A stretch of 64,000 nucleotides of DNA from Zygnema circumcarinatum SAG 698-1b (lineage: Eukaryota > Plantae > Zygnematophyceae), in assembly GCA_037447605.1 (NCBI GenBank), contig CM074821.1:1860001-1924000 (forward strand). Direction: 5' to 3'. Each line of letters starts with the position of its first letter. Position 1 is the stretch's first letter. Both the position numbers and the translations under genes were made by a program. The notes under the pieces are model-generated. The model did not search any database, had not been told where the DNA came from, and saw only the letters and a list, made by a program, of their open reading frames with translations. This document shows positions 11,021 through 59,835 of this stretch, in pieces.

Positions 11021-11399
11021 CATTGATCCTAGCATCCAGTTTTGGCCAGTACGGTAAGGTGGTCGAATGGATGTGTACGGCTACCCGTACGATCGAGACC
11101 GCTACTATAGATAGTACGGTACGGCTCGCAAGGATGTGCTGTACGCTAGCTTTCCTTCAAAAGAAAAAACAAGAAAACTTGGACAGGCGGGCAGCAGAAA
11201 ACGTTTCATCAGCGCCAGACAATCTGACCGCTCTCTCCGACGATTTCATGTCGGGCAGGAAAGACAATGGATTCATTCAGGTACGGTCAGATAAACAACA
11301 GGCTGCGGATCAAGATCCTCGTGCGTTGCCTTTTTATAGAAATGCCTTTGATCCTTAATTATGTGAAGTGAACTGAAAGTGAAACTAAATGAACACATA

Positions 11400-11670
11400 A
11401 GCTGATTGGGTACACGATATACCCCATTTTCTGCGTTTTGATCTAACGAAACGTACTACCAATCAGGTCGTGCGACTTGGCAACCTTAGACTTGCGGCAT
11501 CTATACTGTATTTTCTATAAATTTATCTTTGACAACCTTATCGGTTACGTTGGTCACATAAATCATTCAAATCGAACGCTGTCGTACGTAGAAAACAACA
11601 CTTGCCAATGACTTTATGGTGACGCGATATTCCTCATTTTCTTGTGTTCGATCTAACGAAAAGCACAACA
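11400..11670 (+). repeat. Degenerate copy (~1.3 units) of the ~205-bp repeat at 31085-31680
   Basis: Shared blocks gatataccccattttctgcg..gatctaacgaaacg..ccaatcagg..cgacttggcaac..agacttgcgg..aatcgaacgctgtcgtac, in the same orientation. Confidence 0.8.
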
Positions 11671-12698
11671 AATCCATAACAACACAACAACGACACAATA
11701 AATAGTTTATTGCGGGTTGGCGTCTTGTTTGTATGTATACGTATAATGGGATGGTGTTGTGATAGCAAGACATGCACAATTTACACCATACATGATTTTT
11801 GTTTGAAAACGAACGACTGTAGCACACTTGAAGTGAAATTCTCTATGTTAATTCCAATCCTAATCTAATTCTATCCTCTAATCGTGTGGCTCTTCTTCCT
11901 TTTTTTGCTTTGCCCCCTGCGAATTCAACTTTTGGACTTTAACGATTGAGGATGGCTCAGGTGGTTCATGGTGTCGCTTAGGCCCCCTTCCCCCTCTCCG
12001 GAAGGGTGGGGTGTCTTGGTTTGGTGGGTTTGATCCTGACGCGACAGGGGACCATGTCCCTCGCCAAGTGTCTGTTGCGATGATTTGTGCGTGTTTTTTG
12101 TCTGCAGTCGCATAGAAAAGATCTGCATCCCTCGCCCCCCCCCCTTTTTCTTGTTGGAATGGAATTGCAACATTGTATTAGTGACCCTTTTACCTATATA
12201 ACGGCGCTGATATGCTCAATTGTTACTTCATGTTGAAAATGTCAATACTAGCCATCCACGTTTTTGAATATGCGTCACAGAATATATTACGACAGTACAC
12301 ATTTTATACTAATATTGTTAGATATCGACTTGACCGTACATATCTTCTTCCGTACACATGCCCTCTATTATTCGTACAGACCTATACACATACAGTATGA
12401 CCCGATCATATTCTCCAATTCCACATTTGCGTCACCAATAATTTCGCGCCAATTTTGTCCAAACGGCAAGATTTTGTACGGTAATTTTGGTTTGATGTAC
12501 AATTCGTGCAGTTCGTGCAATCGGTACTAACCGTTCTAACCGTACTAGCTGTACTAGCCGTCAAGGCCTACGCAAATCACACCGATTCTCCCTGCACGTG
12601 CCGCCGTAAGAGGCGCTCTCTCGTTTCCCCTCTTCTCTTTGTTTCGATACGATTCGTTACTGTTGGAATACGAATACTTATATAGTGACAGCGTCACT

Positions 12699-13528
12699 TT
12701 AACGGTGGTAGACTGTATTCTTGAGGAGTACCTGGCTTACTTTCGGTACTAAGGGCTTACCTCTTGTCTCTCGTTGTCCTGTTCGGATTTCCGCGAGGTC
12801 ACGCCGGTAGTCATCCCGGAAGTCCTCCAACATTTGACTGTTCTTGTCGGCAGTCCGACAAAGGAGGAGCTCCAGCGACTGGATCTGATGTTCGATCCGG
12901 TCCAATCGATCTTCCTGAACCGCAGTTCGGACCACGAGCTCGTTGCGCTCCCCCACGATGTCAGCCAGGTCCTCTAACATTACCGGTCTGTTGCTGTCGT
13001 TATGTTCTGGAGGGTTTTGCTGATCTTTCTCCCATCCGTTATGGTATGATGGAACTTTTCGCTCCGCTGATGTAGCGTGAACAGGTTCCCCGATTGGTGG
13101 GACGTTCTCCCCCGAAGCTTCGCCCATGGCTGTTCTAGCAGGTCACAGTGGTGGGGACGGTAGCGGTGCGGGCTGTGAAGCAGTGTGTTCCCTAGCCTCC
13201 TCTTCCCGTGTGCTAGCCGTGACAGATGCGGAAGGAGCAGAGATTTGGATGAGCACCAATACGGGTGGTGGAGGTGGAAGGGGAAACGTCGGTTCATCCG
13301 ACGGTGCCGGTTCCCCAACACCCCTTGCGCGCGTGGTGACGATGGTGGATGAGATGAACAGCCGTCTGAAGTGCCGGCTCTGAAGCAGTCTGTTCGCTAG
13401 CCTGCTCTGCCCGCGTGCTAGCCGTGACGGATGCGGAAAGAGCAGAGTGTCGAAGACCTGGATCTGATACGAAAACGGTTGGCGGCTGGCGGTGGGTTTA
13501 AATCTGCCGAAAACGAATCGTGCCTTTG
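12699..13528 (-). pseudogene. Decayed ORF: repeated Ser/Ala/Thr peptide followed by a coiled coil
   Basis: ORFs 13143-13550 and 12699-13127 are in the same frame, split by one TGA. A 67-bp direct repeat (13176-13242 / 13381-13447) encodes SA[P/L]SASVTASTR..E.A.E.TAS.PA in two different frames. The C-terminal part is heptad-like (VQEDRLDRIEHQIQSLELLL). The 5' part is interrupted by an LTR. Confidence 0.45.
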
Positions 13529-14009
13529 TGTAGCGAAACGCTACAGTCACCCACGGGAGGTGTACTTAGGGCGCGCTCCGTCCTAGTACTCTCACCTCGG
13601 GCGCGGGCCGAGTGGCCAAGGCGTCGGGGACCACCTAGGACCAGGAAGGGTCCTGGGATCGAACCTTGCGAAGGTTGCAAGGGTTCGATGCGGCGCNNNN
13701 NNNNNNCGGTGAGCGTTCGTACGTTGTACACCTCTGACCCATTCGGGTCAGAGAGGGACACGTGGCAGTCTGCCATTGGACAGCCCTGCTTCCAATCCTC
13801 CATGCTGGTAGGAGGTTCGACGGGGGAAGCGTAAAGGGGCGTGGGTGACTGTGGTCACCCAACCAACGTACCGGCATTCGGTTGCACCACTGACCAGGGC
13901 TGCTCCCCACTCTGAAGCTCGCTCGCTCTTGCTCTCGCCCTCTCGCTGAACTCTGAGTGCTGGTGTGTTATTCCGCGCAGGCTGAAGGAGTTAGATTTCA
14001 GCCGTTACA
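13529..14009 (+). mobile_element. Solo LTR (or collapsed LTR element) with 5-bp TSD
   Basis: Starts TGTAGCG, ends CGTTACA, and is flanked by an exact CTTTG duplication (13524-13528 and 14010-14014). An N gap at 13697-13706 lies inside it. Confidence 0.85.
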
Positions 14010-14528
14010 CTTTGCTTGTCGCTATGTGCGTCTGGCACGTGCAAGTGTGTGTCGCATGAGTGAGACGCGCGTGGCGACAAAACGATTTGGGGCAGTCAGC
14101 GGGCGGCGGGCGGTGGATTTAGTGTGGCGTGGCGGAAAGGAGGGGTCAGATTTGGCTAGAAGGTACGACTGAAAAATATTTGAAATCGCTGTTCTCGAAC
14201 TTTCCGATGTCCTCTTTTTGCAAAAATGGCCTGCCGTACACGACAAAACTGGCCTGTTTCGAATACATAATTTGTTTACCATGGACAACGTCTGACTTGT
14301 TGTTTTACATTGTCACCGACAATGACGACAGATTTTTTTGGTGACGAAACCAAACTTCTAAAACCTCTAACCTCTAGTTAGAAATTCTATCGTCAGAAAC
14401 ATCTGAATTGGGCTGTTACATTGCCACTCTTACAACGGAAACAACAGAAAAAACAACTATAAGTATACATCCAAGCACACATTTCACTAAAACACTTAAC
14501 AGATTTCAGTAGTGACAACTGATAACAT

Positions 14529-15891
14529 TTGGTCTTCATGACGTTAACGTTCGAAATCCGGCAGTGCGGGATTTTTGACTCACGAATCACACGATTACCA
14601 GTGGAAGTGCTGACGAAAATTTTAGAATTATGTATTCGTCACAGTTGTGTTTTTATTCAATCGGCTATTCAGTTATCAATAGTATGCTCACAATTCAAGA
14701 AAGTTGTGGAGGCTTCATCAGTAGCCGTTATTGATAACAACTGTGCAGACCGTATATCAACGTTGGCCAACGATTCAGATGGTGAAGCCAGATTAATTGC
14801 AAGACAATTACGATTCTTTTCAGCTCTTCGTGAACTGACAATCCAGTGTGAATATATTCCATCGCTGATGTTTGATTATTGGACACCAGTTTTTGGAAAG
14901 ACATTGACTATGCTGACGGTATCTTATTCGAATCAAGGATTAAATTGGGGTCATTTCGCTGCACTATCGGAATATCCGTACCTTGAGACAATAGATGTAC
15001 CCATAGAACTCACAGGTGTTGGAAGACAAGTATTAAGGCCCCTAAGAATGGTAACAACGATTGTGGCGTGATGGCGAGGATGTATTGGTGGCCATACCGA
15101 GCTGTTTCCACTCGCACGTTTAATCACTTTCTTCAACTTTTTCCCATACTTCGTTCACTTGTCATCGATAATTTGTTTGATAACAAGATGCTGGGGATCC
15201 AACATTCAACTCTGCGGAACCTTGTTATTTTTGGAAAAATAACTGATTTGCGGATTGAGTGCTCTGAATTGGAACGTCTGCGTGTTGGGGCAGATGGAAA
15301 TATCGGGAAAGCCGTCATTGTATTTCAACATTTGAAATCATTTGAGATCGAGGGTGACATTGATCAACTTGATTTTATCGATCAGCAACCATCCATCGAC
15401 CGTTTAACTGTCTTTCTGGTGGCGAAGAAAACGTTTGTTCCCAACAGCACTTGAATGTAGAACATATACACTACTCGGGTGAATATGCCAATTCTAATTT
15501 TGAGTTTTTAGTGAAAAGCAGGAAAACGTTAGTTGAAGCTTGTTTCAGTTGTCGTTATGCACAAGATCAATTGTCTGTTGTTTTAGGACACGGTGAAAGT
15601 TTTCCGAGAATGTTATTTTGTAAGTTTCAAAATGTGATGAATGCAGAATTTATAGACATAGTGTTGTCACTTTTGGGAGCTTGCCCTCGACTTCATTATG
15701 TTCTCTTTGAATTAGAGGTATCTACTGCAAGAGATTCAGACGGACAATTTATAGACAGAATATGTCGTCTCAAGACAGAAGTTATAAACTTATTCGGTCT
15801 AAGTAATAGGAGAGTTTGTTTGTACGTTGAGAGTGTAGACACAGTTTTTCCTATTCGATGTCTTGATTTATTTACTGGCATCACTACATAA
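14529..15891 (+). pseudogene. Intronless F-box/LRR (RNI/FBD-like) gene with two -1 frameshifts
   Basis: F-box motif ITRLPVEVLTKILELC...LSIVCSQFKKVV, then LxxLxI repeats (LRELTIQC, LTMLTVSY, LRSLVID, LRNLVI, LERLRV, LKSFEI; CPRLHYV). Three overlapping ORFs (14529-15071, 15068-15454, 15451-15891). AT-rich like the Helentron ORF. A-tract at 16016-16058. Confidence 0.7.
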
Positions 15892-17560
15892 TACAAGGTA
15901 TTATCGACATGTCACGTACAATGTAAATTTTTTTTTCTTGTGTTTGCCCGTTTTTGTTGTTGTTAAGTGTGACAAATTCTACTTTCAAAGTAATACGTCC
16001 ATAGCTCTCTTTTCCAAAAAAAAAAAAAAAAAAACAAAAAAAAAAAAAAAAAAAAAAAGTAAAATTTTTGATGTAGGTTCAGATATTTTTCAGGGATTAA
16101 ATATCTTCATTTTAGAATATTTTAAAAATTCCTCTCAAGAATGATCGCTATCTGATTGGAGAATTTGTTCAGTTTAAAAACATACAGACGTTGTTGTTGT
16201 GGTTTGTATGACTATCTGACTTTTATTGTAGTATGTTTGATCTACTTCTAAAAAAAAAAAAAAAGATGTTGATTTCGATAATTTTTTAATTTTCTGTCAC
16301 TGTAAGTTGAGTTACTGTGTCATAGTGATAAAACATAAACCTTATCTCAAACATGCTTCATCGTTTTAACATGTTTATCTGGCAAGTCTAGCAAAATTAC
16401 CACTGTGGACAGAAATTTGTTTAAAAAACAGAAGTACCTTTGCAATCTATTGCTGAAATCTTTTTGTTGCAAATCTGTCTACTTCATAACCTGACTGCAT
16501 GCTGCTTGCGAAAAACCCTAAAAACCCCAAAAATCATAAAAACACTAAAAAAATTTAACCACATTAAAAAACCTTAAAATCCGTACTATATTCATGGCTA
16601 AAACATTATTATTCTTCTTATGCCTTGCCGCCTATGTTTCCTGTTCCAAAATGGTCGCTTGGAGCTGTTGAACTTTGGCTTCCAATAGCTGGTTACGTTC
16701 CTCAAGCTGAATTATCTTCTGCATAAAGAAAAGGGGAACAGTAAACGTTCGTTGTTTAGTATTTCTTTCTCCAATTATTCAAGGAAAGGAAGAAACTACA
16801 AGACATTCCTTTATGCACAACTTACTAGAAGTTTGTAATTTTGATTTGTCGGCGGAATCACAATTTACTTCGAAATTAACGAAGGGCCAAATCCAGTCCA
16901 CGATGTGTAATCTTTTTTTTAAGCTTGTCAGTGAATGCTGCTGCATCCCTCTCAAACCGATTATTCCCTGAAAAAAAAAAAGGGGGTCAGAGGGGGTGAG
17001 GGAGGGTTGAAGAATTGTAGTGACCATAAAAAATCTCATCATATAAAAATAAAATAGCAATTCATAATTTACATTAAAGCGTTTTGGCTCAACCGCGACA
17101 CTTTCGACTGCCTTTGAGGCTCAATCTTCAAAAGGTTTTATCCTGTTGTAAAAAAAAAAAAAAAAACGAAAAAAAAAAAGAAAAAAAGCCAGAGAAGAAA
17201 ATATCACAGCTGCCAGCACATAGGGAAACAGTTGTGTTGGAAATGGATGGACTATGTGTGTCACTTAATGCATAACCGACATTTTGAAGCGACTTATTGA
17301 CGCTTCGTTTCCTTGCCTTGTGCAAACCGAGTCTTTGCATTGTCTGATAACTGTAAAGAAATAAAACATATTGTTTTGAGCGATTTTCTTTCGTCATCAC
17401 CATCGATAATCTAAGCTGTACAAACATTTCTAAGAAATAAAGTCGGTGAAAAAATAGTTGCGCATGTTTGCTCGTAAATTGTCACGGTGTCTAATTCTTG
17501 GACATCTATTGGCTTTGCACTTTCTAGTGTTTTTTGTTCTGTTACTGTAACCGCAAACGA

Positions 17561-20159
17561 TTAGACATCCTTGTGTTGTTCTTTTGTTGACCACTCGTCG
17601 ATATGTGATCCATCATAAGGTTGTTCAGTGTCGTCTTCTCCGTGTGTAATCTGCAATGTCAAAATATCATTGTTATTAGTCACATGTTATGTTCGTCTGT
17701 TTGTTTCCCTAATGTGTTGTAGGTTTAAGTTTGTATTACCTTGTGTTTTTTTTTGTAAACCACATTTATGTCCGCTGGTGTTAAATCTTCGATTTGGTAC
17801 AAAATTTTGGCGTCATCCCTTTTCATCTTTATCTGCATCCTCATCAAACAAATATCGTTTATATTAGCATCTGATAATTAGAATTATTGTTCCTTATTGT
17901 TTATGAAAACATCATCCTTATGTTTTCTTACCTTTGCAGCGAAATTTCCTTCAAGTTTTTGTAATTCTTTTTTCTTGTTGTTGTCCGATAAATCCTCCCA
18001 TGTGCTGGCATTGTGGCCTGTCAAAAATTTGATGGAATGTGGAAAAATTTTTGCTTCCCTTTTTTCCGAATCTGCCAACATCACAACACAAGTATAAAAA
18101 TTTTATTAAAACGAATTTAACATTTATTTTTTCCTTTTTGGAAAATGCAATACAATCACGAAAAAAGGCAAACTTAACAATGTCGATAACAGTATACGTA
18201 CTTGCATCTTTCATTGTGACTGTGACGATCAGAAGTTTCATTGTTGTTGTTGGTCCGTGGATTTTGCATTCAATTGGTCCGTTTGGAACACGAGGGTATG
18301 CTGGCGCATTACAAAACATACCCACGTCTATGACGCGGTTGCAGCGTTCAGCAATATTTGCACGGGCACTCTCGGTGTGCACCATAATTGTCATGGTCAT
18401 TTCAGTATTGTTCTCAATTACGTACTCGTTATCCATAAACCTATTCACATTCCAATAACGTAGTTAAAATGTATCTCACATGATGTAAGATCAATGTGAT
18501 GATGATGATGGTGATGATGTGTGATGTGATGTGTGTGTGTGATGTGGCGATAATCAGTGTGCTTTGCTCTTACCTTGATGTATCGGTTTCGACTCCAGCT
18601 AATGGATGGGTTCGTTTTATTCCGTTTGGTCCATGTATTGCTGTGATTGTGCGATCATCCGTCAAAAAAATAATAGATGTCCTGACAAACAACCAAACAT
18701 ACGAGATAAATTCAGATAAGTTCACAAAAGTACAGGACATATTTTGGAAAATATTTTTTGAAATATTTGATGTTAGTCTGTTGTCTTTTGTTCTTGAAAC
18801 AGACTAAATGATGAAAACACTTACGATGAAGATACTTTGAGCATGTTCCCAGTGAATACACAATTCGTGAGTCGAATGGCAGTTTCACCGACTGTGACGC
18901 CCGTTTTGTGTATAATATCCGTATCATCACCCCACAATGTAACTTTCCGTATTCTTGTATAATCTTCTAATTCAATATCGCAATACCCTTTGAATCCGTT
19001 TTTGGTTTCGGTTTGCTTAATATCTTGTCGACTTTTAAGCACACCTTGGACATCGAATATCATCTGTAACAATGGACAGCCGAACATTAACGTGTTGTTG
19101 TCATGATGTTGATCAATCATTACGTGATTAGGGAAATTCGTGCAAATTAAAAAAAAAACCTAGTCATTACTACAACAAAAATGAACACGCTTACATTGAC
19201 GTTTTCAATGATCACCGACAGATTTTTTGGAGGAGACGGTTGTGTGAATTTTAACATCTGTGCCTCTGATGTTTCGAGCACGTTAATAATCGTCCTTTTC
19301 GTTGGCGACAATTTGTAAGCTGATCCATAGCGCCTGTATCTGCAATATTTCAAAAAAGGATGAGAAACATGTGTAAATTTCGAAATAAATAAAGACTTTT
19401 TTGTCACTCTTGTCTTTAAACCCAAACTCAAAATTAATAAATATATTGGCAAAAGCTTTCAACTCACATATCTTTTGTCGGTTTCACGTATGGATTGCAT
19501 ATCCGAATAATATCCCCTGCTTTGTATCTCAAAAATGTTTCAGTCATTTCGTCGATGTGTGTATCTTTCTCCCAACTTTCAAACATAAACTGTGTGCCAG
19601 CCTCATCGTACACGTCCAAACACGCTACCGCTGACTGTTTAAAAATTTTTGGTAGGGAAATATGTTCGATTTTGAGAATCATATGGAAATCAGCCTTCAT
19701 CGTAGTAGATAATGATGAAAACAGTAATTTCGGTGTCGATATGAACTCCTATTAAGAAACACAAACAGTTTATCAAATCTTTCATAAGATATTAACATAA
19801 TCTGTTATATAATGATAATACAGTGCACATGCCAAATTAAAATGCTTTGTGTATTCTTTTTTTACTCATCAAAGGATGACATCACTTACTTTTTCTGAAA
19901 TCACCTTCCCGCCAGAGCTGCATTCGACGTTTGACCCTGTAGCATTGTCCTGCATGTAAACATTTTGTACAGTTGTGTCAAAAAAGCGAAGGGAATGTAA
20001 AGTTAGGAAAAATATGCTTGTTATATCACAATAATCCAGTTTATCTGATTGTTAATATTTCGTTTCACTTTTTGTAAGTTTGTATCTTACTATTTCACGA
20101 TGAACATATGCAGAAGATGACCCTGCGCGAAGAATGTTACTTTCCACGTTTTGACTCAT
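17561..20159 (-). CDS. RPA70/RPA1-like ssDNA-binding protein (3 OB folds + Zn ribbon), ~487 aa, transposon-borne
   Basis: Ten GT-AG exons with consistent phases: 20159-20091, 19949-19890, 19748-19468, 19339-19195, 19063-18825, 18681-18574, 18440-18202, 18071-17932, 17832-17740, 17650-17561. DBD-B-like FDVQGVL..DIELEDYTRIRKVTLWGD; DBD-C-like C-x8-C-x14-C-x2-H followed by VTMKDA..AKIF..FLTGHNASTW. Confidence 0.75.
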
Positions 20160-20203
20160 ATCTGCGTTGACTTGGACATGAAACGTCAGTTTTTGAAGGT
20201 ACA

Positions 20204-23200
20204 TCACATGACCTGCAAATAAATAGGATTATGATCACTCCAATATGCTTCCATCACTCTTGCAGTAACTTCACAGTCTGAATTTACCCACACATGATCT
20301 AATTGACTACCGTATTCAGTTGTAGACTGCTGAATTATTTGTTTAAGACCTAAAGCCTCCATAGTAAATATATAATTGGTAACATCCATTGATAGCGGCG
20401 TAATTAACAAGTCTTCATTAAAATCACCAATTATCAGTACTTTCTGACCTTTAATATTTTTAAGCATATCCCTGATTTTAGTAGCAACAAACATGAGAGA
20501 AACAGATTTCGGTTTTCGGTATATGATACATATAAAAATAACTGTCTTTCCTTTCGTGATACGCAGTAAATCTAAATGACAAGCAACATTCTTAAACTGT
20601 TGTATAAATCTAATATGGATTTTCGTGTACGACATTATACCATCGTGTTGACTGGTGTCACAGTCAGTATCACCTAAATGCGCACGATTTGAAAAACCGG
20701 CTATTTCAAGACATTTGATGTCGTCTGCAGATGTCAGCCATGCCTCAACGAACAAAAGCAAATCACAATCCACATAAGCTGAATTTTTCAACTCTTCAAT
20801 GTTCTTCTTGATCGATCTGATATTCTGATATGCAATATGGATAGCATTAATATTATCATTTACGTTAATATCAGCAGGACACACGATCATTATACGTTCA
20901 GCTCGTAACCTGATCATTTCGTTTTTGACACTTTGTGAAACCTTTATTTTACTTTCATTTAAATCATATATGGACAAGTTTGACGAAGTTTCAAAACGAC
21001 TCAAAGCAACATAATGCATACCATGTCCAAGATTACCAGATAAATTAACATAACCAGCTGGCAAACTTTTCCCTTGTGCTCTGTGTATCGTAATAGCTGA
21101 ATTTGGAGCAAGGGGAAATTGACACCTGTTCACTGTACATTGGTCATTATTTGCAAAAGTAAAAGAACGCGATTCTCGTGAAATACCAGTCCAATCACGA
21201 CAGATAGGGAAACGATCGTAATACGAAGAGAGATTTCCCCTACGATTTCGGCCAACGTCAGCATTATCAAATAGAACCCAAACTATACATACTTTATCTT
21301 CAGCACGACTAAAATACTTTACCACACCAGTGGCACCGTTAGTTAAGCCGTCAGAAACATCTACATTCATTGTCATCTCAACACGCAAACCAACGCGTAA
21401 TCGTAAAACTGAATGCAATTGCGATGTTTTTCGAGGATCATTATATACATCGTCAGGCAACACAAACCGCCACGAAACATTGTATGTGTTAGTATCGTCA
21501 GCTGTTAATTCTACAGCTTCTGTGGCCATAGATTCATAAACACGACGGTTATGCTCCTCTACTAAAACTCGTATACGATATAGATGTACTAATGTCAGAT
21601 CTGGATCATGATCATTAGTTACCACTCTCTTTTTTAATTCAAGAATATCTGACTGGGTATGATTTCCCTCCCGTAATCTGTTCAGTATTTCTGCAAACAC
21701 CTTCGCATTCTTTTGTCTCATGATTTCTGTAAGTTCAAACATAACAAAATGTTCCTGCCATAAACTGTTCACTAATACGGAATAATCACGCTCCGTGTTA
21801 GCAAAAACATAAGAATCTTTCACTGGTGCTAACTGAAAAAAATCTCCTACACAGAGCATATGCAATCCTCCAAAAGGTTTAGTTTTACAAAAAAGAGATC
21901 TTAACCTGTCATCCACAGCCATAAATAAACGCTGTCCAACCATTGACACTTCATCTATAATGACAAATTTAATACTATTTAATTTTGACCAAAGAGTGTT
22001 TTTTTTATCATCCGTGATAGACATACTACTACTCTGAGTGTACGGTATACTGAGAGCACCATGTATTGTATGTCCACTAATATTAAACGCAGCTGTGCCA
22101 GTTGGAGCTAAACGCAAGACTCGTGGCTCATCAAAATTGGTGTTTCTGTCCTTATTGAACAAACGAACTAGACCTTTGTATAATGTTTGTACTAATCTGG
22201 ACTTTCCAACACCTGCTCCTCCTGTTAAAAAAATTCGTAGTGGTTCATCTGTTTTCTTCACATGATGTAACACATGATAAAAAAACAATTTTTGTTCTCT
22301 GTTTAAAGACCTAGCCATTTTCCTATATTCATCATCCGAAACTAACTTATTACATACCACATACTCACGAAAGTTAGACCCAGTTTGTAATCCAAGTTCT
22401 TTGTTTAAATCAAATTCTTGGTTGACTTCATCAGTAATAATATTTGTCGACGGTATTTCACCGACAATATCATTCTGTATTTCCTCTCTTATTTCTACGA
22501 ATATATTATCCCAATTCACAATCTCTTTCTCAAACAACCGTCGTACTGACTCAATATGGTCATTATGACGATCATATAGCAGATTGACATAAGCAGCGTT
22601 CAGTAAGGACTCTTCATTACGCCAAGGATAAAAGAGCATAACTAAGACACGCCGCACATCATCTTCATCATCAGATTTACCTCTGACATATTTCAGAGTG
22701 TGTTTTTTTTTTCTTAAACGATAATATCGTTGGAACAATGATTTATCTGGCCCATAAGTCTGTTGATTAGTACATATTACACGTACATGATATGAATCTT
22801 CATCATTGTTCCCATCATTTTCACCATCCTCATTTCCGTCAGACTTATTATTAACCTCATCATAAGATGCGGCAAAATCAGCTAAACAGATATTTTCTAG
22901 TGAATCAGGCCTCAACGTATATCTTGTTAGTAAAGCGTTAGGTATATAAACATTTTCATCATCAGGACACAATTTCTTTAATTCTTTGTCAGCTTTTAAC
23001 AACAATAACCTTTCATTGGGCTTGTTAGTATTCACGAACCTAACAGACCGTGAACAACAACGTAATGGCAAACCCAGAACCAAATATACAGCTTCTTGGG
23101 CAGAAACTTCATGCGCACGAAAGAAAACATTTCCAGCCATACTTAACTGCTGCCGTATATCTGAATTTTTTTTCTTAGCTTCTCTACATGCATTATCCAT

Positions 23201-26043
23201 TAGAGAAGACATACCATTTTGCCCTTTACACATATATGACACAATGTATTTTGCCACTGCATACGGTTCTAAGCAAAACTGTATATCCATATTAGCAGAC
23301 CATAATTGCAAAACTTTAGCATTGTAGTTATTAATGCGTATTTCAGATACTGCGCGTCTTAGCATTACCGTAGGACGGTCTAGACTCCATCGTACAGCAG
23401 TCATGTATGCATTTTCATCTAATTTCAATTCTTCCAACAAATCGTCAAAACTTTGTGTACAGTCTAAATCCACACCACGTTTTTCTAAACACACTTTAAT
23501 ATTTATCCAATTTTTTTGATGTCTATCCATTTCATCTTTTGTAATATTTGTTAATGGATTTAAAATACATGTTTCACGCATAGGAGGAATAGGATATCCA
23601 AAACGACAGCTAACCAAGCCGTTCTTTTTGCGACTGCAATATCGTCTAGAGTGTCTATGCACCTGCAGTTTTACAAGATCCATACTTACTTGATCTTTCG
23701 AACACGTTATATATTTATCTACAAACTTTATCATCAGATTAGTATCAAACACTCCATCACGTTTAAACATATCCTCAAAACAGCCAGCATAAAGTAAACA
23801 ATGAGTATGAGGTGAACCTCGCTGCTGAAATTCATCGACACAAAACCAGTCCTGAAGCTCACCAATTATTTCTGGACATTTTTTCAAACAAATATTAAAT
23901 AAAGACTCGACACGGTTCCGATAATAGCGTGCACATGTGATTGGGTCAGAACGAACTAAACGCGCACGATCCTCGTAAGATAAAGCAGCTGCATTATCTT
24001 CAGAAATTTCTTTATCATCAACTACTTTTGACAATATCACATGCAGCTCTTTCCACCGTGAATCAGCCATAGATAGACTCATAAAAAATGTAGGTCTCCC
24101 TAATTGGCGAAGCATTGCAAATACATCACTTATGTTTTGCTCCCAGTATTGAGGACTACCACGCAGTCTTGAGAATTCCCGATACATCACATCATTTTTA
24201 AATAAAAGAGATTTGAATTGTGGATCTAATAAGTTTCCAGCATTAATACCAGTTAACCCTGCTAGTTTTCTCGTTCTCATTTTTGCATAGATGATATTAG
24301 ATATTTGATTAATTTGATATTTTCGAAGCTTGAAAAAAATATTAGATATATTCGTGGCTGCTCTTCTATCAACATTCCGCAATTCCCATTTGCAAACATC
24401 ATGATAATATATTTTTTTTTCATTAAAACGCTTTTTCCCACAGAATATTGTTGGGAAGCTTAATTCTTCACTGTATTCATCATAAAAAAGACCTAATGGT
24501 GTTTGTCCTTCCCCTGGTGCAACATCTAAAGTGTTATCTGGATACAAGTCGGTACTGTCAAGTAAAGAGGCATAATTGTCAATATTTGTCTCATCATCAA
24601 TATGATCCTCATCAGGATCAACGTCACTGGACTGCGAACCATCGGAACTATCTAATCCTTCACCATCAGCGACAGCGTCATTATCGTCAACGTCATCACT
24701 ACCGCCCTGCATAACATCTAAATCGGTTTGACAATGTCTGAGAATTCTCGCATTGACATCACACATAGACACACCCGCTTCCGTCCATAGTCCATTCTCA
24801 CATAACCATGCCAGACTTGTCAAAACGGCCTGCGGACGGATCGTTTCGGACCAAACAGCAGTCTTATATGACAATTTTCTTTTAAAACGTAAACAAATAG
24901 TCTCTAGCTCGTTACGGACACGCGGTAACTTTAATACTGTTGTATTTACCATAGATGGGACATTAACAATACTGCCTTTTAAACCAATTTGACCTATTCG
25001 TTTTACTTTCAAATCACGTATAACCATGAACGGTATCCTAGGGGAAATTAATCGTTCTTCTACAGTATTTAAATCACGTAACACTGATGGCTTATCATGA
25101 AAATAAATGTTTTGACGTGAAAGAAGAGGTATTCTTTTTTGGCTAGCACTTTTGAAACACCTCATACACATCAGAAACATCTATCACATAAATCTTCGAC
25201 ACAGTATTTATGAATATCTTCGGTATACAGTTGAACATCTTTCATATGTCGTTTAAAAAACAATTGACTGCAACAAACACATACAGATGTTGGACCTTCA
25301 CGTATGCTTAAATGGAATTTATGTTTTACTACATAAAATGATGATGGAAAATTCTTCATCATAAAGTCATTGCAAATATCAGTAAGAAAAGTCAAATCCA
25401 TCATAGACACCATTGCAAATATCTCATCACTCCTATAATTTAAACCATAACTACTATCAAAACTCAATTTTTTCATAAAAATGTCACGACAAACTTTCAC
25501 TATTTCAATATTATCAACTTCCTTTATTTTCACATACACAAATCGACCTTGAAGACATATGACAAATAATGACGTCCACTTATCGTCACATTCATATACA
25601 CCTAAATCTTTTACAGTAGAGAAATCACCATCATGAATAGTTAACAAACCGTACTTAAATAACATTTTATCAACACAAACATTAACATCAGTTATCTCAA
25701 AATCTGATACAACAGTCATATAGTCAAAATTTCGTCGCTCTCTTGATGTACATCCAATTTTACACAAACTGTAATCATATGCGTATGCAGCATGACAACA
25801 ACATGAAAAATACCCAAGACATAAATCCCATATTCTGCCAATTGTTAATACTGTCTGCCATTCATTACAGTTTATCCGTTTTATACCAATAAAATTTGGT
25901 TTCTCGAGTTCGCAATTCCTATAGTCCATAAAAGAAATACCATCACTTTCGGCACGGCAACCAACATGCAACGAAACACACACACATCGATAAGGACCAT
26001 CGCGTCGTCGTCGCTTTAACCTTCGTAAACTATGTTCTGACAT
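20204..26043 (-). CDS. Helentron RepHel-EN transposase (Zn finger/DUF6570, HUH Rep, PIF1 helicase, APE-like endonuclease); one frameshift near 25175
   Basis: GPTSVCVCC...CMRC..LNTVEERLISPRIPFM..GSIVNVP. Rep motifs PTFFMSLS, EFQQRGSPHTHCLL (HUH) and YIVSYMCK (Y2). PIF1 motifs GGAGVGKS, APTGTAA, IIDEVSMV, GDFFQL, IMRQ, TIHRAQGKS and YVALSR. C-terminal EEP motifs YQNIRS, FVEAW, IIGDFN, LDHVWV and WSDHNPI. Confidence 0.95.
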
Positions 26044-27487
26044 ATTTTATATTTATGTCATCATCTATTTCAAACGATAAGACAATACAATGATTGGTTG
26101 TATCAGCCATCGTTCATTGGCAATCAACATAAAAATACAGCGAGGTTAGACATGTACCGTGATGAAGTGATAGGAATTGACGTAGCTTCACAGAACAGAA
26201 ACCAACGACGTCCAAGCAGAAATAAACGCACATGAACAACGAACAAAACTAGTTGTCAAGTCACGTCAAATAGAGCAGTCGTAACAATAGATACTGCAAC
26301 AGCTACCTTATACCCTCTAACGACACAGTACGTCAAAACTCATCTTAATTTAACTAACAAAACAACCGTTTCGGAAGTTGTCAACCGAACCACATCTAAT
26401 CTTGCCGGTCCAAAATTAGACAAGAAATTACGGTTGTCAAACACATAACGGTACAAACATCCCGTTTCGGGAATGGTCAATCGACAATCGCAATTCTGCG
26501 ATTACGAAAGTCGTACAAAAAGGACCAGTCCAAATACAGCCGTTTTGTCCAATTACGGTGACGACGACGATTGACCTACCGATTACCATCAGGTTATAGA
26601 TCATTTGACCGTCAGGTCACTTTCGTCATTTTCTCGGCGGCCTCCGTACAGCCAATCGCCAGTCAAATCGCCGCGCCGCGCCGCGCGTCGCATCTGCGCG
26701 TCATATGCGCGTGTCGCATGAACGACGTCGCCGGTGTCGCATGCGTGCGTCACGAATTTTGCACCGTCCGATCAGCCTTTATCGCTTAATGATGACGTCA
26801 GCCATCCCTCGCTGCGAGACACCGCGTAGTCGTGACGCCGCGTGGAGCCGCACGCCACGCGTGCCGTTTCGGGCATTGTCAATCGACAATCACAATCCCG
26901 CGATTACGAAAAACGTAAAAAAAAGAGAGCCGAAATAGAGCCAAATAGAGCGGTTTCGTGCCTGTACGGTGACGTCGACGACGTTTCGATGACGAAACGT
27001 TTACGGAACAACCGCAATATCATCTTCCCCTGTTCTTCACGTCCTCCCGACATCCATTTTCTTACACTCGCCTGTTTAGCTGAAGAGTTGCTGGTGGTGC
27101 TTGCTGCCCTATTGTTCCGAATTCTACCGTAACCAACACTTATGTCGCTGCGAATTCTCTGCCTTTCTGCTGCTGCAGCTCTTGCTGCATTTCTTCCTAC
27201 CAGAGAAATGCGAAAAACCGAAAAATAATGATTGGTGGAGGAGGAGGAGGAAGGAGGAAGGAGGGAGAAGGAACAGGAAGTGTGGTGAAAGGATGAGGAG
27301 GGCCCTTTGGATGGCGCCCACTTGGAAGGGAGGAGGCCTTTGAAGGGGGAGGGGGCAGCGCCATGGAACGGGAGAGGGGAGCGGCAACGGAGGAGGAGGG
27401 GGAGGGGGAGGAGGAGGAAGAGGGACGAGTGACGGGTGCTGAGGTTTTCTTTGCGTCCACGTCCTCGGAGAGGTGAGNNNNNNNNNN

Positions 27488-29467
27488 TCACTATTTCAAT
27501 ATTATCAACTTCCTTTATTTTCACATACACAAATCGACCTTGAAGACATATGACAAATAATGACGTCCACTTATCGTCACATTCATATACACCTAAATCT
27601 TTTACAGTAGAGAAATCACCATCATGAATAGTTAACAAACCGTACTTAAATAACATTTTATCAACACAAACATTAACATCAGTTATCTCAAAATCTGATA
27701 CAACAGTCATATAGTCAAAATTTCGTCGCTCTCTTGATGTACATCCAATTTTACACAAACTGTAATCATATGCGTATGCAGCATGACAACAACATGAAAA
27801 ATACCCAAGACATAAATCCCATATTCTGCCAATTGTTAATACTGTCTGCCATTCATTACAGTTTATCCGTTTTATACCAATAAAATTTGGTTTCTCGAGT
27901 TCGCAATTCCTATAGTCCATAAAAGAAATACCATCACTTTCGGCACGGCAACCAACATGCAACGAAACACACACACATCGATAAGGACCATCGCGTCGTC
28001 GTCGCTTTAACCTTCGTAAACTATGTTCTGACATATTTTATATTTATGTCATCATCTATTTCAAACGATAAGACAATACAATGATTGGTTGTATCAGCCA
28101 TCGTTCATTGGCAATCAACATAAAAATACAGCGAGGTTAGACATGTACCGTGATGAAGTGATAGGAATTGACGTAGCTTCACAGAACAGAAACCAACGAC
28201 GTCCAAGCAGAAATAAACGCACATGAACAACGAACAAAACTAGTTGTCAAGTCACGTCAAATAGAGCAGTCGTAACAATAGATACTGCAACAGCTACCTT
28301 ATACCCTCTAACGACACAGTACGTCAAAACTCATCTTAATTTAACTAACAAAACAACCGTTTCGGAAGTTGTCAACCGAACCACATCTAATCTTGCCGGT
28401 CCAAAATTAGACAAGAAATTACGGTTGTCAAACACATAACGGTACAAACATCCCGTTTCGGGAATGGTCAATCGACAATCGCAATTCTGCGATTACGAAA
28501 GTCGTACAAAAAGGACCAGTCCAAATACAGCCGTTTTGTCCAATTACGGTGACGACGACGATTGACCTACCGATTACCATCAGGTTATAGATCATTTGAC
28601 CGTCAGGTCACTTTCGTCATTTTCTCGGCGGCCTCCGTACAGCCAATCGCCAGTCAAATCGCCGCGCCGCGCCGCGCGTCGCATCTGCGCGTCATATGCG
28701 CGTGTCGCATGAACGACGTCGCCGGTGTCGCATGCGTGCGTCACGAATTTTGCACCGTCCGATCAGCCTTTATCGCTTAATGATGACGTCAGCCATCCCT
28801 CGCTGCGAGACACCGCGTAGTCGTGACGCCGCGTGGAGCCGCACGCCACGCGTGCCGTTTCGGGCATTGTCAATCGACAATCACAATCCCGCGATTACGA
28901 AAAACGTAAAAAAAAGAGAGCCGAAATAGAGCCAAATAGAGCGGTTTCGTGCCTGTACGGTGACGTCGACGACGTTTCGATGACGAAACGTTTACGGAAC
29001 AACCGCAATATCATCTTCCCCTGTTCTTCACGTCCTCCCGACATCCATTTTCTTACACTCGCCTGTTTAGCTGAAGAGTTGCTGGTGGTGCTTGCTGCCC
29101 TATTGTTCCGAATTCTACCGTAACCAACACTTATGTCGCTGCGAATTCTCTGCCTTTCTGCTGCTGCAGCTCTTGCTGCATTTCTTCCTACCAGAGAAAT
29201 GCGAAAAACCGAAAAATAATGATTGGTGGAGGAGGAGGAGGAAGGAGGAAGGAGGGAGAAGGAACAGGAAGTGTGGTGAAAGGATGAGGAGGGCCCTTTG
29301 GATGGCGCCCACTTGGAAGGGAGGAGGCCTTTGAAGGGGGAGGGGGCAGCGCCATGGAACGGGAGAGGGGAGCGGCAACGGAGGAGGAGGGGGAGGGGGA
29401 GGAGGAGGAAGAGGGACGAGTGACGGGTGCTGAGGTTTTCTTTGCGTCCACGTCCTCGGAGAGGTGA
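27488..29467. other. Exact ~2-kb duplicate of 25498-27477 next to an N gap (probable assembly artefact)
   Basis: Apparently identical sequence resumes immediately after the gap at 27478-27487. Confidence 0.8.
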
Positions 29468-29804
29468 GGTTGAGGGCGAAGGGGAGGTTTTTGCGTTGAA
29501 TTTGGTGTTGAAGGAGGGAGGGGGTTGGCATGTGTGAGTGAGGGAAGGCAGTGTAACCAACACTTATGTCGTTGCGAATTCTCTACCTTTCTGCTGCTGC
29601 AGCTCTTGCTGCATTTCTTCCTACCAAAGAAATGCGAAAAACCGAAAAATAATGATTGGTGGAGGAGGAGGAGGAAGGAGGAAGGAGGGAGAAGGAACAT
29701 GGAGTGTGGTGAAAGGGAGAATGGTGGAAGGGCGAAGGAAGAAAAAGGAGAGGGTGTTGAGGAAGGAGGAGGAGGAAGGAGGGTGTTGGAGGCTACTAAC
29801 TGAC

Positions 29805-30730
<926 letters not shown>

Positions 30731-30753
30731 ACAAACAAAAAAAAAAAAAAACG

Positions 30754-30874
30754 TCTCAATATTACAACATAAGGCCAAATGTTGTAATATTTAGATTGTT
30801 TTTTTTTTAAACCACACACAAACTGCGAAAACAGAATGTGGCCACATTCTGTCGTAGCAGTTTGTGTGTGGTTT
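30754..30874. other. Two adjacent long hairpins, both with GGCC at the apex
   Basis: AATATTACAACAT(30758-70)/ATGTTGTAATATT(30779-91); AAACCACACACAAACTGC(30809-26)/GCAGTTTGTGTGTGGTTT(30857-74), enclosing the perfect palindrome ACAGAATGTGGCCACATTCTGT (30831-52). Confidence 0.9.
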
Positions 30875-31084
30875 TTTTTTGGTTTTTTTCCCATTTTAGG
30901 GCTACGTGGCAACACCTGATTGGATAACAAACATCCAAAAACACACTACAGAACCAACGTGGCAATTTCTGACTGGATAAGAAGTATAACTAATTCCGTT
31001 CGTGCTAACCAATAGGAATGCACCACGTGGCCACTTTAAACAATACGTCCCGTAAACCATCATAACCACAAACTGTCGTACATA

Positions 31085-31680
31085 GAAAACGACACGTGGC
31101 AATCACAGAATCGGTACGAGATATACCACATTTTCTACGCATTAAATCCGACGAAACACACAACCAATCATGACGCGCGACGTGGCAACGTCAGACTCGC
31201 GGAAACTATACCCCATTTTCATTAAATTCATCATTCACAACCTAACCGAATCCGTACACCACATAAAACATCAAAATCGAACGCCGTCGCACGAAGTATC
31301 GACACGTGGCAATGACAGAATGGGAACGCAATATACCCCATTTTCTGCGCATTCGATCCAACGAAACGCACAGCCAATCAGGACGCGCGACGTGGCAACG
31401 TCAGACTCGCGGAAATTATACCCCAATTTCATTAAATTCATCGTTCACAACCTAACCGAATCCGTACGCCACATAAAACACGCCGTCGTAAGTACAAAGT
31501 GACACGTGGCAATGACAGAATAAGTACGCGATCTACCCCATTTTCGGCGCATTCGATCCAACGAAAAGCACAACCAGTAAGGACGCGCAACGTGGCAAAG
31601 TCAGACTCGCGGCAACTATACCCCATTTTCATTAAATTAATCTTTGACAACATAATCGAACCCGTCGTACGGATCAAAAC
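31085..31680 (+). repeat. Three tandem 200-210-bp units, each with two ACGTGGC (G-box/ABRE-like) motifs
   Basis: Units begin gacacgtggcaat at 31091, 31301 and 31501. Confidence 0.9.
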
Positions 31681-32049
31681 GACCGCAAAGCTTTTGCCTA
31701 CGGCAACGCAAAAATAACAGGGGGATCCAGATCTACGTGCGTTGGTTGCCTCGTGGTCCGACGAAATAGGGTAAATTACCCGTTCTATGAGGAAGTGGCA
31801 CTACGAATCAGTGGACGCCACGTGGACGTTTTGAAGCTGTAACAGGCCGCATCAGCCGTACTGGCGGCTGGCGGCCATCTTTGTCGTTTTTATTACCGTA
31901 GAGCCATCCGAGGCGTAGGCCGGTGATTCACGCGTGACCCGGCGCGGCTTTTTGGCGGTACCGTATGGTGTTCGCGGAAGTTGCAGGTTCTCAGTGTGAC
32001 GTCACAATGAGCAGACTACGGTATCAGCACACGCCTGGTTAGGGAGTGT

Positions 32050-33061: not shown

Positions 33062-42238
<9,177 letters not shown>

Positions 42239-50454: not shown

Positions 50455-52663
50455 ATGGCGGCCAAGAAGCAACAGGCCGTGCTCTCGCGCTTCTTCTCCC
50501 GCCAGCCCCCTGCGCGCGTTGCATCTCCTGCTTCTCCCGCCCCTCCCTCTCCCTTTCCATCTGCCTCTCAGTCTCCCTCTCCCTCTCCCGCGCCTCCTCG
50601 CACGGCCGCTAGGAGCTCTGCTGCAGCCGGCCAGTTGGCCTCCGCACTGCGGCAGCCGCTAGCTATCGCGGGAGGCAAACCGTTTCAGGATTTAGGGTTG
50701 AAGGGCTCCAAGCGGCGAGCGGTTGAGGAAGGTGAAGGAGACGAGGAGGAGGGCGTGGAAGGGGAGGGAGAGGGCTCGTTACGAGCTGTGAAGAGCTTTC
50801 GGAACAAGAAGCGGCCTCGAAAGGACTTCCATGGCGGCAAAGAAGGCCAGGAAGAAGCTGCAGAAGAGTTGTCTGAGCCTTTGGTTGAGGCAAAGCGCCA
50901 AGTGGCGGCACCTCCGGCCTTGGAGCTGCCTTCTGACCCTCATCGCCATGCTCAGTTCGTTGAGCGGCTGCTCGCTCGCGGGGAAGAAACTGGCCGAGAG
51001 CGTGACACGTGGCAGAACGGGAGGTGGGAGGGTTCGGTGAAGGAGAAGGAGAAGCTCACTCCTTTGGAGCAGCAGGTAGTGGAGCTGAAGGCCAAGCATC
51101 CGGACGTTCTGCTCATGGTGGAGGTGGGCTACAGGTATCGTTTTTTTGGAAATGATGCTGAAACCGCAGTGCGCGTATTGGGTATTTATGCTCACTATGA
51201 TCACAGCTTCCTCACCGCCAGCATTCCCACTTTCCGCCTGCACGTGCATGTGAGGAGGCTGGTGGAGGAGGGATTGAAGGTGGGAGTTGTAAGGCAGACG
51301 GAAACAGCGGCGATCAAGGCACATGGGACGAACAAGGGGGGTCCGTTTACTCGACACCTGTCGGCACTTTATACGCGGGCGACGCTGGAAGCTGCAGAAG
51401 ATTTAGGAGGAGTAGCTCAAGATGACAGCGAAGGGAAGGGCCGTCTAAGCAGCTATATCATGTGCATTGTAGAAGAATGTCAGGAGGAGAAGGTTTCGGG
51501 GGAAGGAGGCATGAAGTGTAGAGGTCTGGATGCTAGAAGTGCGAACAAACAGAGTTGGGATGCAGAGTTTGGTATTGTGGCTGTGGAAACCGCGACGGGT
51601 GATGTTGTGTACGACCAATTTAGAGATACAGTGATGCGGACGGAACTTGAGTCTCGACTTTTGACGATCTCGCCCGCAGAGCTTTTGCTCGCAACGCCTC
51701 TCTCATCCGGCACGGAGAAGGTGAGGCATTTTAGAACGAAGTGAAAAGAAACGAGTGATTTTGACTTCAACCGCATCTCACACCCCGATAAATTATTGAA
51801 GGAATTGCATGAATATTCGCCGTAGACAAGCCAAGTCAGAGGATGATTAAGAAAGTCAAGAACAGCAGACCGTGAAATATCATCAGAAAGGAAAGATCAC
51901 GATAAATAGAGTTTTGTGAGGCTTATGGTTTCCAAGTCTTGAAGGTTTTCATGTTGTAGGATGACCAACTCCCGTGCTTTTTAAATTCTTAGGGTCGGCT
52001 CCCTTTTTTTACCGCAATTGAAAGCGCTGTGGTGCAAGGCAGAAAAGGAAAAATTTGGGACAAACTGATGACTATGAATGTGTTTCTAATCATAGTGGGA
52101 TTTTTGCTGTTTGAGCAAAAAAAAAAAAAAACCAATCGATCGATTCAGCCTAAGTTTTACTTGGCTTCTGCACAGCTGCTAGCAGGACTCGCCAGAGGTA
52201 CTTCAGAGATCCGTACAGAGAGGGTGCCGAGGAAATGCTTTAAAGATGGAGGGGCTCTTACGGAGGTTGCAATGTTCTATTCGAGAAGGGAGAAGGAAGA
52301 GCATAACGGGGAGGTAGAGGAGGAGGGGGCAGGGAAGGAGGGAGCGGAAGCGGCCGTAGATGCAGGACTTCAGGTGAATGCGCATCCAGAACCTTTCAAG
52401 GCCCTTTCGTCCTTACTTGCTTCGGATAATTTGTTAATCATGTTTGTAAATTAGAGCCTTTTTCAGGAGCTGGATTCACCATTCGTTTGACCCGACTTTC
52501 TCTTCCATGATATTTGGTTAAGTACGCTCATGCTGCTTTTTGTAGTCTTCTCATCCACTCTTCTACCTACTTCCTCGCTAACTTTCCTAATGCTCCCTCA
52601 ACCCCCTCCTTTGTCTATGTCCATCGTCCTCCCCCCCCTCGCTCTCGCCCTTCCTCCCTCCCC

Positions 52664-52696
<33 letters not shown>

Positions 52697-58600: not shown

Positions 58601-59835
58601 CACGATGGAACTGCCCTTGCCTACGCAGCTCTGCAGGTGAACTCACAGATGGGTGAAGCTCTTCAGAATGATGTTTTTCAAGAGGATGTTTTAAAGGAAG
58701 AAAATCAATGAAAAGAATGACTCGATATACTTAATTGCTTGGCAAAACGGAATTGTAAGAGAAGGTCTTGTTCTCCTGTTGAGCTGTGATGTGAATCTTA
58801 TCGCAATTTTTACGATAGAACCCTACTTGTACACTAGTTTTTGCAGAGTGTCTGCAAAAATGCTTACGCGATCTTTGTATTGGAGAGACTCTGAACATTA
58901 GCAAGTGGGGTTTTTTGACCTTCTTTGATTTTTTTATAAGCCTTCTGAAACGCATTCAGTTTCTTGTTTTTGGCATGGGCCGCACAGCATCTTCTTACGG
59001 AGACACGTTGCCTCACTCTCTTCGTCACCCATTATCCGAAAATTGCAGAATTGAAGAACGAACATCCTAATGAGCTAGGAGCATACTATGTGTCGTACAT
59101 TATGGAAGACACACCTCCACCCTCTCTAACACAGAAATCGCTTCCTCCTGAACGGGCAGAGGAAGCGACGAGGGAGATAGAGGGAGGGGATGAAGTGAAG
59201 CTCGATGTTGCGGTTATGGAGGAAGCTCCCTTTAGTAGTACTGATGGGAGAGGGAGAGATGGAGAGGGGGAGCGAGAAGATGCCATAATGAATATGGCAG
59301 AAGATGCGAGAAAGAGGATCACTTTTCTGTACAAGTTGGTGCCAGGTGTCGCAAGCCGAAGCTTTGGACTCCACGTGGCACATATGGCGCAGGTAGGAAG
59401 TTCCCCCCTTAATATGGTAGGTAGTACATGTGGAGTTAAACATGACTTAACATGTGGAGTTAAACATGACTTAACATGTGGAGTTGAACATGACATTGAA
59501 TTAACGTTGCTGTGAACGCCCATCTCTTCTTTTTCTATTTCCCTTTTTGTGGTCTGGAGGTGAAAGGGAGGGCCATGGGGGACATCTCAAAGAGTGCCGT
59601 ATCAATGTCAGTAGAGAATATGGATGATCCTTAGGATGGATTAGACATGAGAAAGTGAACGCCTTTTTTTTAGTTTTCTGATTTTATATGCTGTTGGTTT
59701 TTGCAGATCCCAGAGAGCGTGGTGATGAGGGCTGGCGTAATGGCGGCAAAGCTTGAACTGGAAGTCAGTCTGAGGAGCAAAGGAGGCAGGGCCGAAGGGG
59801 GCAAGGAGTGGGACGTGACAGCTGCAACGACATGA
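50455..59835 (+). CDS. MSH3: DNA mismatch repair protein MSH3 (assembly has gaps and repeated exon blocks)
   Basis: PIP box QQAVLSRFF; [36 protein letters not shown]; [11 protein letters not shown]; [18 protein letters not shown]; [19 protein letters not shown]; [12 protein letters not shown]; FVTHYP; SRSFGLHVA. Last exon 59707-59835. Confidence 0.96.
52707..57627. other. Repeated MSH3 exon blocks flanking N gaps (52707-54202 ~ 54214-55711; 54968-56323 ~ 56334-57627), probable assembly artefact
   Basis: Near-identical copies, introns included, each starting right after a 10-N gap. Confidence 0.8.
59426..59495 (+). repeat. 24-bp tandem repeat x3 in an MSH3 intron
   Basis: acatgtggagttaaacatgactta units. 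Confidence 0.85.

Follow-up and report, generated by a model that had tools for sequence, protein, structure and literature searches.

Helentrons in which an open reading frame (ORF) for an RPA protein stands beside a Rep-helicase-endonuclease gene were described in 2014 (PMC4067079). These elements end in terminal or subterminal inverted repeats of 12-16 nt, with a short 3' palindrome and T or TT flanks, and are separated from Helitrons by the serine of the RG(S)PHxH motif, where Helitrons have a leucine (PMC4067079). In the HELIANO survey (PMC11417382), RPA, Ssb-like_OB, OTU and endonuclease domains are accessories of HLE2 elements, DUF6570 is the HLE2 marker, HLE2 elements are reported in land plants, and F-box-associated domains are found captured by HLE1. 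Here, we analyze a 64-kb window of the streptophyte alga Zygnema circumcarinatum SAG 698-1b (contig CM074821.1, positions 1,860,001 to 1,924,000; coordinates below are those of the window). We consider it likely that the window holds one degenerating copy of an autonomous-type HLE2 Helentron on the minus strand of this streptophyte-lineage genome, with a frame-split transposase gene, a downstream OB gene and an opposite-strand F-box-like ORF in a unit of at least 12.6 kb (14010-26600). Its principal features, each with the evidence behind it, are as follows.

14010-26600, minus strand: compositionally distinct block, the minimal extent of the element (GC content, observed/expected CpG ratio, and GC content at third codon positions, GC3)
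20204-25180, minus strand: Rep-helicase-endonuclease ORF of 1658 residues with DUF6570, HUH Rep, PIF1 helicase and a C-terminal L1/APE-type endonuclease (Pfam, homologues, motifs, endonuclease profile)
25171-26043, minus strand: ORF of 290 residues, read as the N-terminus of the same transposase (homologues aligning across a frame change)
17561-20160, minus strand: putative multi-exon RPA70-like gene region, directly after the transposase stop (ORF pieces)
18824-19159, minus strand: exon-like piece with an RPA-type, DBD-B-like OB fold (REPA_OB_2, exhaustive protein search)
14529-15891, plus strand: F-box/LRR-like ORF in three frames (14529-15071, 15068-15454, 15451-15891), convergent with the RPA-like gene (sub-threshold motifs)

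The transposase carries the main finding. Three domains of the 1658-residue ORF lie above their Pfam cutoffs: Helitron_like_N, the HUH Rep (E = 9.5e-24); the PIF1 helicase PF05970 (E = 1.8e-29); and, upstream of the Rep, DUF6570 (PF20209; E = 4.1e-15, 56.8 bits against a cutoff of 24.3). The endonuclease was harder to detect. Exo_endo_phos remained below its cutoff (20.4 bits vs 27.4), and a PDB sequence search with the endonuclease domain alone returned nothing useful; only a profile search succeeded. A profile built from the C-terminal 219 residues of the transposase and nine homologues matched the LINE-1 ORF2 endonuclease at E = 7e-11 over the whole domain length, and its columns E40, D147, N149, D189 and S209-D210-H211 are invariant, the present copy included. 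An alignment with 13 homologues gave the same picture for the whole protein, with all catalytic motifs kept (RGSPHTH, YIVSY, GGAGVGKS, IIDEVS, E, GDFN, DH and SDH). The HUH motif (SPHTHC) and the tyrosine pair (YIVSY) fall on invariant columns of this alignment, and Walker A (GGAGVGKS) and Walker B (IIDEVS) of the PIF1 domain are conserved. The Rep-helicase-endonuclease architecture proposed in the original prediction is thus borne out.

The transposase reads QQRGSPHTH and therefore has the Helentron-type serine. We assign the element to HLE2 because this serine and DUF6570 are both published markers. Judged by its sequence, the element is a real Helentron of the endonuclease-bearing HLE2 subgroup in a plant-lineage genome, as had been proposed: Rep, helicase, endonuclease and both markers are present.

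The relatives of the protein are numerous and distant. We found 891 database proteins that match the transposase, the best of them 36-37% identical over the full length, and in a search of 5.8 billion proteins the top identity of any relative was 37%. Among the best 120 of the 891, the named organisms are nearly all animals (corals, oysters, a hemichordate, a sea cucumber), and many of these 120 proteins bear OTU and endonuclease domains. A metagenome scan for relatives found none, and an exact look-up of the transposase in public assemblies returned no record. The marine-invertebrate Helentron transposases (P0001 and P0012 from Oculina patagonica, P0020 from Ptychodera flava, P0025 from Apostichopus japonicus) are collinear with it over 100% of the query, have the same domain order and keep the catalytic residues. 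However, they are only 36-37% identical to it, and many of them have an N-terminal OTU protease, whereas the Zygnema copy has a domain-free N-terminus of 290 residues. A tblastx search with the accessory region detected no OB or F-box neighbours in two animal Helentron loci (L001 and L002).

This N-terminus is not in frame with the remainder of the protein. Alignments with homologues run over 25317-25177 in one frame and over 25159-20210 in the next. On this evidence, the 290-residue ORF is the N-terminal part of the same transposase, detached from it by a single-base frame change (near 25170-25195); it gave no Pfam match. The whole transposase gene would then occupy 20204-26043, which is 5840 nt including the one frame change. 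Since the N-terminus is frameshifted in the present copy, the earlier description of the element as a self-contained replicon is not supported.

The best-described counterpart is Helentron-Mo-1A of the mite Metaseiulus occidentalis, together with related animal Helentrons (Thomas et al. 2014, PMC4067079). The likeness consists of the fused C-terminal AP-type endonuclease, the separate RPA70-like ORF and the RGSPHxH motif. The combination of an RPA gene with an APE-type endonuclease, previously regarded as unusual for this locus, was therefore already published for Helentrons (PMC4067079; PMC11417382). Two differences from the mite element stand out. The RPA ORF of Metaseiulus occidentalis is intronless with clear DBD-A and DBD-B, whereas only one OB fold is detectable in the Zygnema gene, which looks spliced (PMC4067079). 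In addition, mite Helentrons have subterminal inverted repeats, a 3' palindrome and T flanks, none of which was found at the Zygnema copy, whose host belongs to an algal lineage and not to the animals (PMC4067079).

The OB gene was searched for homology exon by exon. The stop-to-stop piece 18824-19159 matches REPA_OB_2 at E = 5.4e-4, below the Pfam cutoff, and Sulfolobus SSB at E = 0.13. An exhaustive search with this piece against 1.84 billion representatives returned four matches. The top one, P0121, was rejected as a spurious sum of weak repeats; the other three are all RPA-type OB proteins. The best OB relative, P0122, matches at E = 2.4e-8 with 41-44% identity and has its own REPA_OB_2 at 1.8e-12. 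Across P0122, P0123 and P0124, the domains carried are REPA_OB_2, Rep_fac-A_C or Ssb-like OB, with Rep_fac-A_C in P0123 and P0124. These matches support the reading, made at the sequence level, that 18824-19159 encodes an RPA-type OB-fold protein. No RepHel gene lies within 10 kb of the gene of the best OB relative in a fish locus (L003). No homology was detected for the remaining exon-like pieces of 17561-20160, including in a PDB search of the DBD-A-like exon; the best weak match among them was a MEIOB_N OB domain (E = 0.17) at 19464-19700. Of the spliced RPA70-like gene that had been predicted, one RPA-type OB exon is therefore upheld, and the other putative exons match nothing. It is probably a diverged gene, spliced and with one RPA-type OB fold or more, located directly downstream of the transposase on the same strand after a spacer of 44 nt. 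No RNA run was found to contain the stretch.

The F-box/LRR-like ORF is broken into three pieces in three frames. Read contigs from three runs of three studies (X1, X3 and X6) match 14713-15936 with 0 substitutions and 0 indels, and we therefore take the frame changes of this ORF to be real and not assembly errors. The domain signals lie under their thresholds: an F-box-like domain at E = 0.01 (16 bits against a cutoff of 24.3), Pfam F-box at E = 0.03, and LRR_14 at E = 0.062, below its cutoff. An LPxEVLxKIL...VCSQFKKVV pattern is visible in the translation, as is an L..L.I periodicity in the second piece. An Atlas search placed F-box-like clusters among the nearest to the ORF, at low feature overlap. 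No relatives of the first piece were found by word search, and the three pieces gave no useful PDB sequence matches. The proposed F-box/LRR gene thus keeps its sub-threshold F-box-like motif, its LRR signal and its convergent orientation, and loses its single intact frame. We read it as a putative F-box gene that would be orphan captured cargo, broken by two frame changes in the present copy.

The association of these three genes is indicated by composition, read depth and paralogous contigs. The block 14010-26600 (12.6 kb) has a GC content of 0.36, compared with 0.50 in the flanks, and its observed/expected CpG ratio is 1.04 vs 0.60-0.68 in the host flanks. Each of the transposase, OB and F-box gene regions separately has a ratio of 0.99-1.07 vs the same 0.60-0.68, and GC3 in the transposase, OB and F-box pieces is 0.23-0.43 vs 0.53-0.65 in host ORFs. 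The lack of CpG depletion could reflect either a recent arrival or an escape from CpG methylation decay. Contig depth stays even from the F-box region through the spacer and the RPA region into the start of the RepHel region. One paralogous contig, found in all three runs, covers 17714-17841 in the RPA 3' region with 11 differences and a 138-nt skip; another, in X6, covers 14794-14927 in the F-box ORF with 12 differences. In X6, the depth ratios of the paralogous contigs to the present copy are alike (1.40 in the RPA region, 1.35 in the F-box ORF). About two copies of the element are indicated by these contigs, and the transposase, OB and F-box genes have probably moved together, in a unit of 12.6 kb or more. 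A run that had been considered as a strain without the element (X17) holds exact element fragments at low depth, and hence provides no empty site.

A degenerate plant-type telomeric run (CCCTAAA-like) was also observed at 16504-16558, within the AT-rich block, where contigs that contain genuine CCCTAAA arrays are attached as loose ends.

The sequences around the block are as follows.

13707-14009, no strand assigned: host repeat of very high copy number, directly left of the block (contig depth)
26366-26926, no strand assigned: upstream region in which CCGTTTCGG-N5-GTCAA is present three times, with a direct repeat of about 110 bp, 402 bp apart, flanking a CpG-rich segment (motif and repeat scan)
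27478-29468, no strand assigned: N gap (27478-27487) and an exact repeat of 25497-27477, to be counted once (1981/1981 bases identical)
30741-31680, no strand assigned: two adjacent long hairpins (30741-30808 and 30809-30874), then a tandem array of about 210 bp per unit (repeat and hairpin scan)

At the left edge, the repeat 13707-14009 reaches a contig depth of 563,584 in X1, compared with about 180 in the neighbouring unique DNA, with loose ends at 13965-14009; with contigs summed, it is about 3000 times deeper than adjacent unique DNA in the three runs. Unique read contigs start at 13980, where this roughly 3000-fold deeper repeat stops. An N gap at 13697-13706 falls in the very high-copy repeat, outside all genes.

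On the other side, upstream of the transposase, the three copies of CCGTTTCGG-N5-GTCAA lie 320-820 nt from its start and occur nowhere else in the window except in the artefactual duplicate. It is possible that 26366-26926 acts as a candidate promoter or cis region.

This duplicate is one of several assembly faults, as the window has 13 N gaps. The sequence 25497-27477 recurs directly after the gap as 27488-29468, with 1981/1981 bases identical. Similar restarts are present at two other gaps (52707-54203 vs 54214-55712, about 99.9% identical; 54966-56322 vs 56334-57690, about 98.7%). Because these two gaps show the same pattern, we read the repeat as an unmerged contig overlap and not as a tandem duplication. 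As the assembly stands, 27478-29468 is an artefact that inflates the span by 1991 positions. The same gap accounts for an ORF of 376 residues at 26904-28034, whose first 182 residues duplicate the start of the transposase N-terminal ORF and are followed by X's and a low-complexity translation; from its composition, this ORF is a chimera across the gap. It is the candidate for the coiled-coil ORF remnant that had been reported without coordinates, and that feature is not confirmed. The other ORFs in the outer segments gave no credible matches.

The original prediction placed an element of 18-20 kb in an AT-rich block at 11400-31700. The AT-rich block exists, with the narrower limits 14010-26600; the longer element is not sustained, since 1991 bp are assembly duplication, the outer segments differ in composition and no termini were found. 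The earlier outer limits coincide with units of the 210-bp repeat. In the array at 30900-31680, ACGTGGCAA occurs twice per unit, with 8 exact copies in the array and 9 in the window vs 0.23 expected by chance. A degenerate remnant of 1.3 units is found at 11385-11676, 62-76% alike and out of phase with the array. The two hairpins at 30741-30874 (one with 30-nt arms that are 87% complementary, the other loopless with 33-nt arms that are 91% complementary) are flanked by A/T runs and stand directly before the array.

Compared with the described plant elements, the Zygnema copy shares features with both groups. HelenSM92 of Sphagnum magellanicum (HLE2, PMC11417382) resembles it in its plant lineage, its captured extra genes and its DUF6570 marker. 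Conversely, HelenSM92 captured a GIY-YIG domain, and the Zygnema copy has the F-box-like ORF instead (PMC11417382). In the HLE2 elements of HELIANO, RPA lies mostly upstream of RepHel and belongs to subgroup a, with the endonuclease in subgroup b, whereas the Zygnema copy has the endonuclease and a downstream OB gene together (PMC11417382). Plant HLE1 Helitrons (the Mothra family, PMC4683698; FBA_3 in HELIANO) share the RPA-like gene downstream of RepHel and the capture of ubiquitin-pathway genes. However, they form another clade, with no endonuclease, no DUF6570, an RGLPHxH motif and TC...CTRR ends (PMC4683698; HELIANO). Particular to the Zygnema copy are its host lineage, its distance from sequenced relatives, the downstream OB gene in an endonuclease-bearing element and the orphan F-box-like cargo.

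Several points weigh against a single Helentron unit that includes all three genes. Searches for the ends assigned neither inverted repeats (terminal or subterminal) nor a 3' palindrome in the expected place nor TT flanks. The left and right sides show no more inverted matches or other similarity than chance would give; the longest inverted match, 13 nt, lies beside a T run. Membership of the OB and F-box genes in the cargo is argued, at the level of sequence, from composition, depth and short paralogous contigs; these contigs are about 91% identical to the present copy, a value biased by the 90% likeness threshold used. The frame change in the transposase is read from the assembly. Only one OB exon is detectable in the RPA-like region, and the AlphaFold2 model of this exon, from a 5-row alignment, has a predicted local distance difference test score (pLDDT) of 34.9, too poor to use. 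The F-box assignment is sub-threshold and without relatives, the AlphaFold2 model of the first F-box piece is likewise too poor to use (pLDDT 31.7), and the run of 43 A's that sits 125 nt past the F-box-like stop could mean a separate origin of the F-box segment.

We weighed this reading against three others. In the first, the element would be larger, from about 11.7 to 30.9 kb (about 17 kb without the artefact), and would end at the 210-bp arrays. Its outer segments, richer in GC, and the hairpins and simple repeats would then belong to the Helentron itself, much as HINE/DINE-1 elements include tandem repeats internally. Related 210-bp units do occur on both sides in the same orientation, the segments 11700-13500 and 26600-27477 are also without CpG depletion (observed/expected 1.01 and 1.23), and Helentron derivatives often hold microsatellites and tandem repeats (PMC4067079). 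However, the likeness of the two arrays is only 62-76% and their phase does not carry across the insert, inverted termini are absent at the arrays too, and 29469-31090 has a host-like CpG ratio of 0.67. The repeat 13707-14009, being about 3000 times deeper than the block, is a host repeat and not element-specific. We consider the larger element possible, though rather unlikely.

It is also unlikely, in our judgment, that the F-box-like ORF is a separate decayed insertion beside the Helentron (for example a retrocopy, or part of some other AT-rich element), which would put the true 3' end at about 17.2-17.5 kb. The ORF has no introns, runs on the opposite strand and, with its two frame changes, looks like a pseudogene; besides the run of 43 A's past the stop codon, A runs are also present at 16251 and 17151. 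T-rich DNA is the insertion target of Helentrons (PMC4067079), and the animal loci L001 and L002 have no similar gene. Against this, the GC3 and CpG signature of the ORF is the same as that of the transposase and unlike that of host genes, a target-site duplication around the A-run retrocopy model was looked for and none was found, and the paralogous F-box and RPA fragments agree in identity and in depth ratio. We regard it as quite improbable that the second copy is merely a segmental duplication of a region with a single dead Helentron, in which case the co-occurrence of the genes would say nothing on their mobility as a unit. In favour of this reading, only about two copies are indicated, with no non-autonomous derivatives and no termini seen. 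Yet a stop-free ORF of 4977 nt is unlikely to have outlasted neutral decay if the divergence of about 9% between the paralogous pieces holds for RepHel, and the match of the paralogous contigs ends after a few hundred bases, with no conservation of flanks seen. A single degenerating HLE2 copy with its two accessory genes remains the reading that we prefer.

If the preferred reading is correct, the known course of Helitron and Helentron transposition suggests how such an element would have moved. The HUH Rep would nick one strand at the 5' end of the element, and the PIF1-type helicase would peel the nicked strand off in the 5' to 3' direction. The OB-fold protein may then coat the single strand, which would re-insert at a T-rich target, the L1-type endonuclease probably making the target nick. 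The role of the F-box-like gene is a matter of speculation. Some plant viruses use F-box suppressors. By analogy, an orphan F-box/LRR-like gene conserved as cargo in two or more diverged copies of a streptophyte-alga Helentron lineage (distant from sequenced Helentrons, at 36% identity) might encode an SCF-recruiting substrate adaptor, directed for example against a silencing or repair factor; we think this very unlikely.

Some of the same assembly faults recur in the remainder of the window. The nearest clusters of its MutS/MSH6-like ORF are Streptophyta. The restarts at the gaps 54204-54213 and 56324-56333 fall inside the MutS/MSH6-like gene region (50455-58711), and duplicated exons or domains in this region are probably artefacts. 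A C-skewed, low-complexity tandem region was observed at 34064-37634 (GC 0.67, GC skew -0.83), with 79%-alike copies at 57660-58342, inside the MutS-like region. Scans of 11000-32500 for tRNA genes and Rfam families found none.

The general picture of these elements is unchanged, because Helentrons with RPA genes and plant HLE2 elements were already published. Part of the value of the analysis is corrective: it identifies a span inflated by an unmerged contig overlap, a chimeric ORF, a broken transposase N-terminus and F-box-like gene, and a MutS-like gene hit by the same artefact. For the family, the Zygnema copy adds an endonuclease-bearing Helentron with intact catalytic motifs to the streptophyte algal lineage, which would be of use for the phylogeny of Helitron-like elements and for questions of their horizontal arrival.

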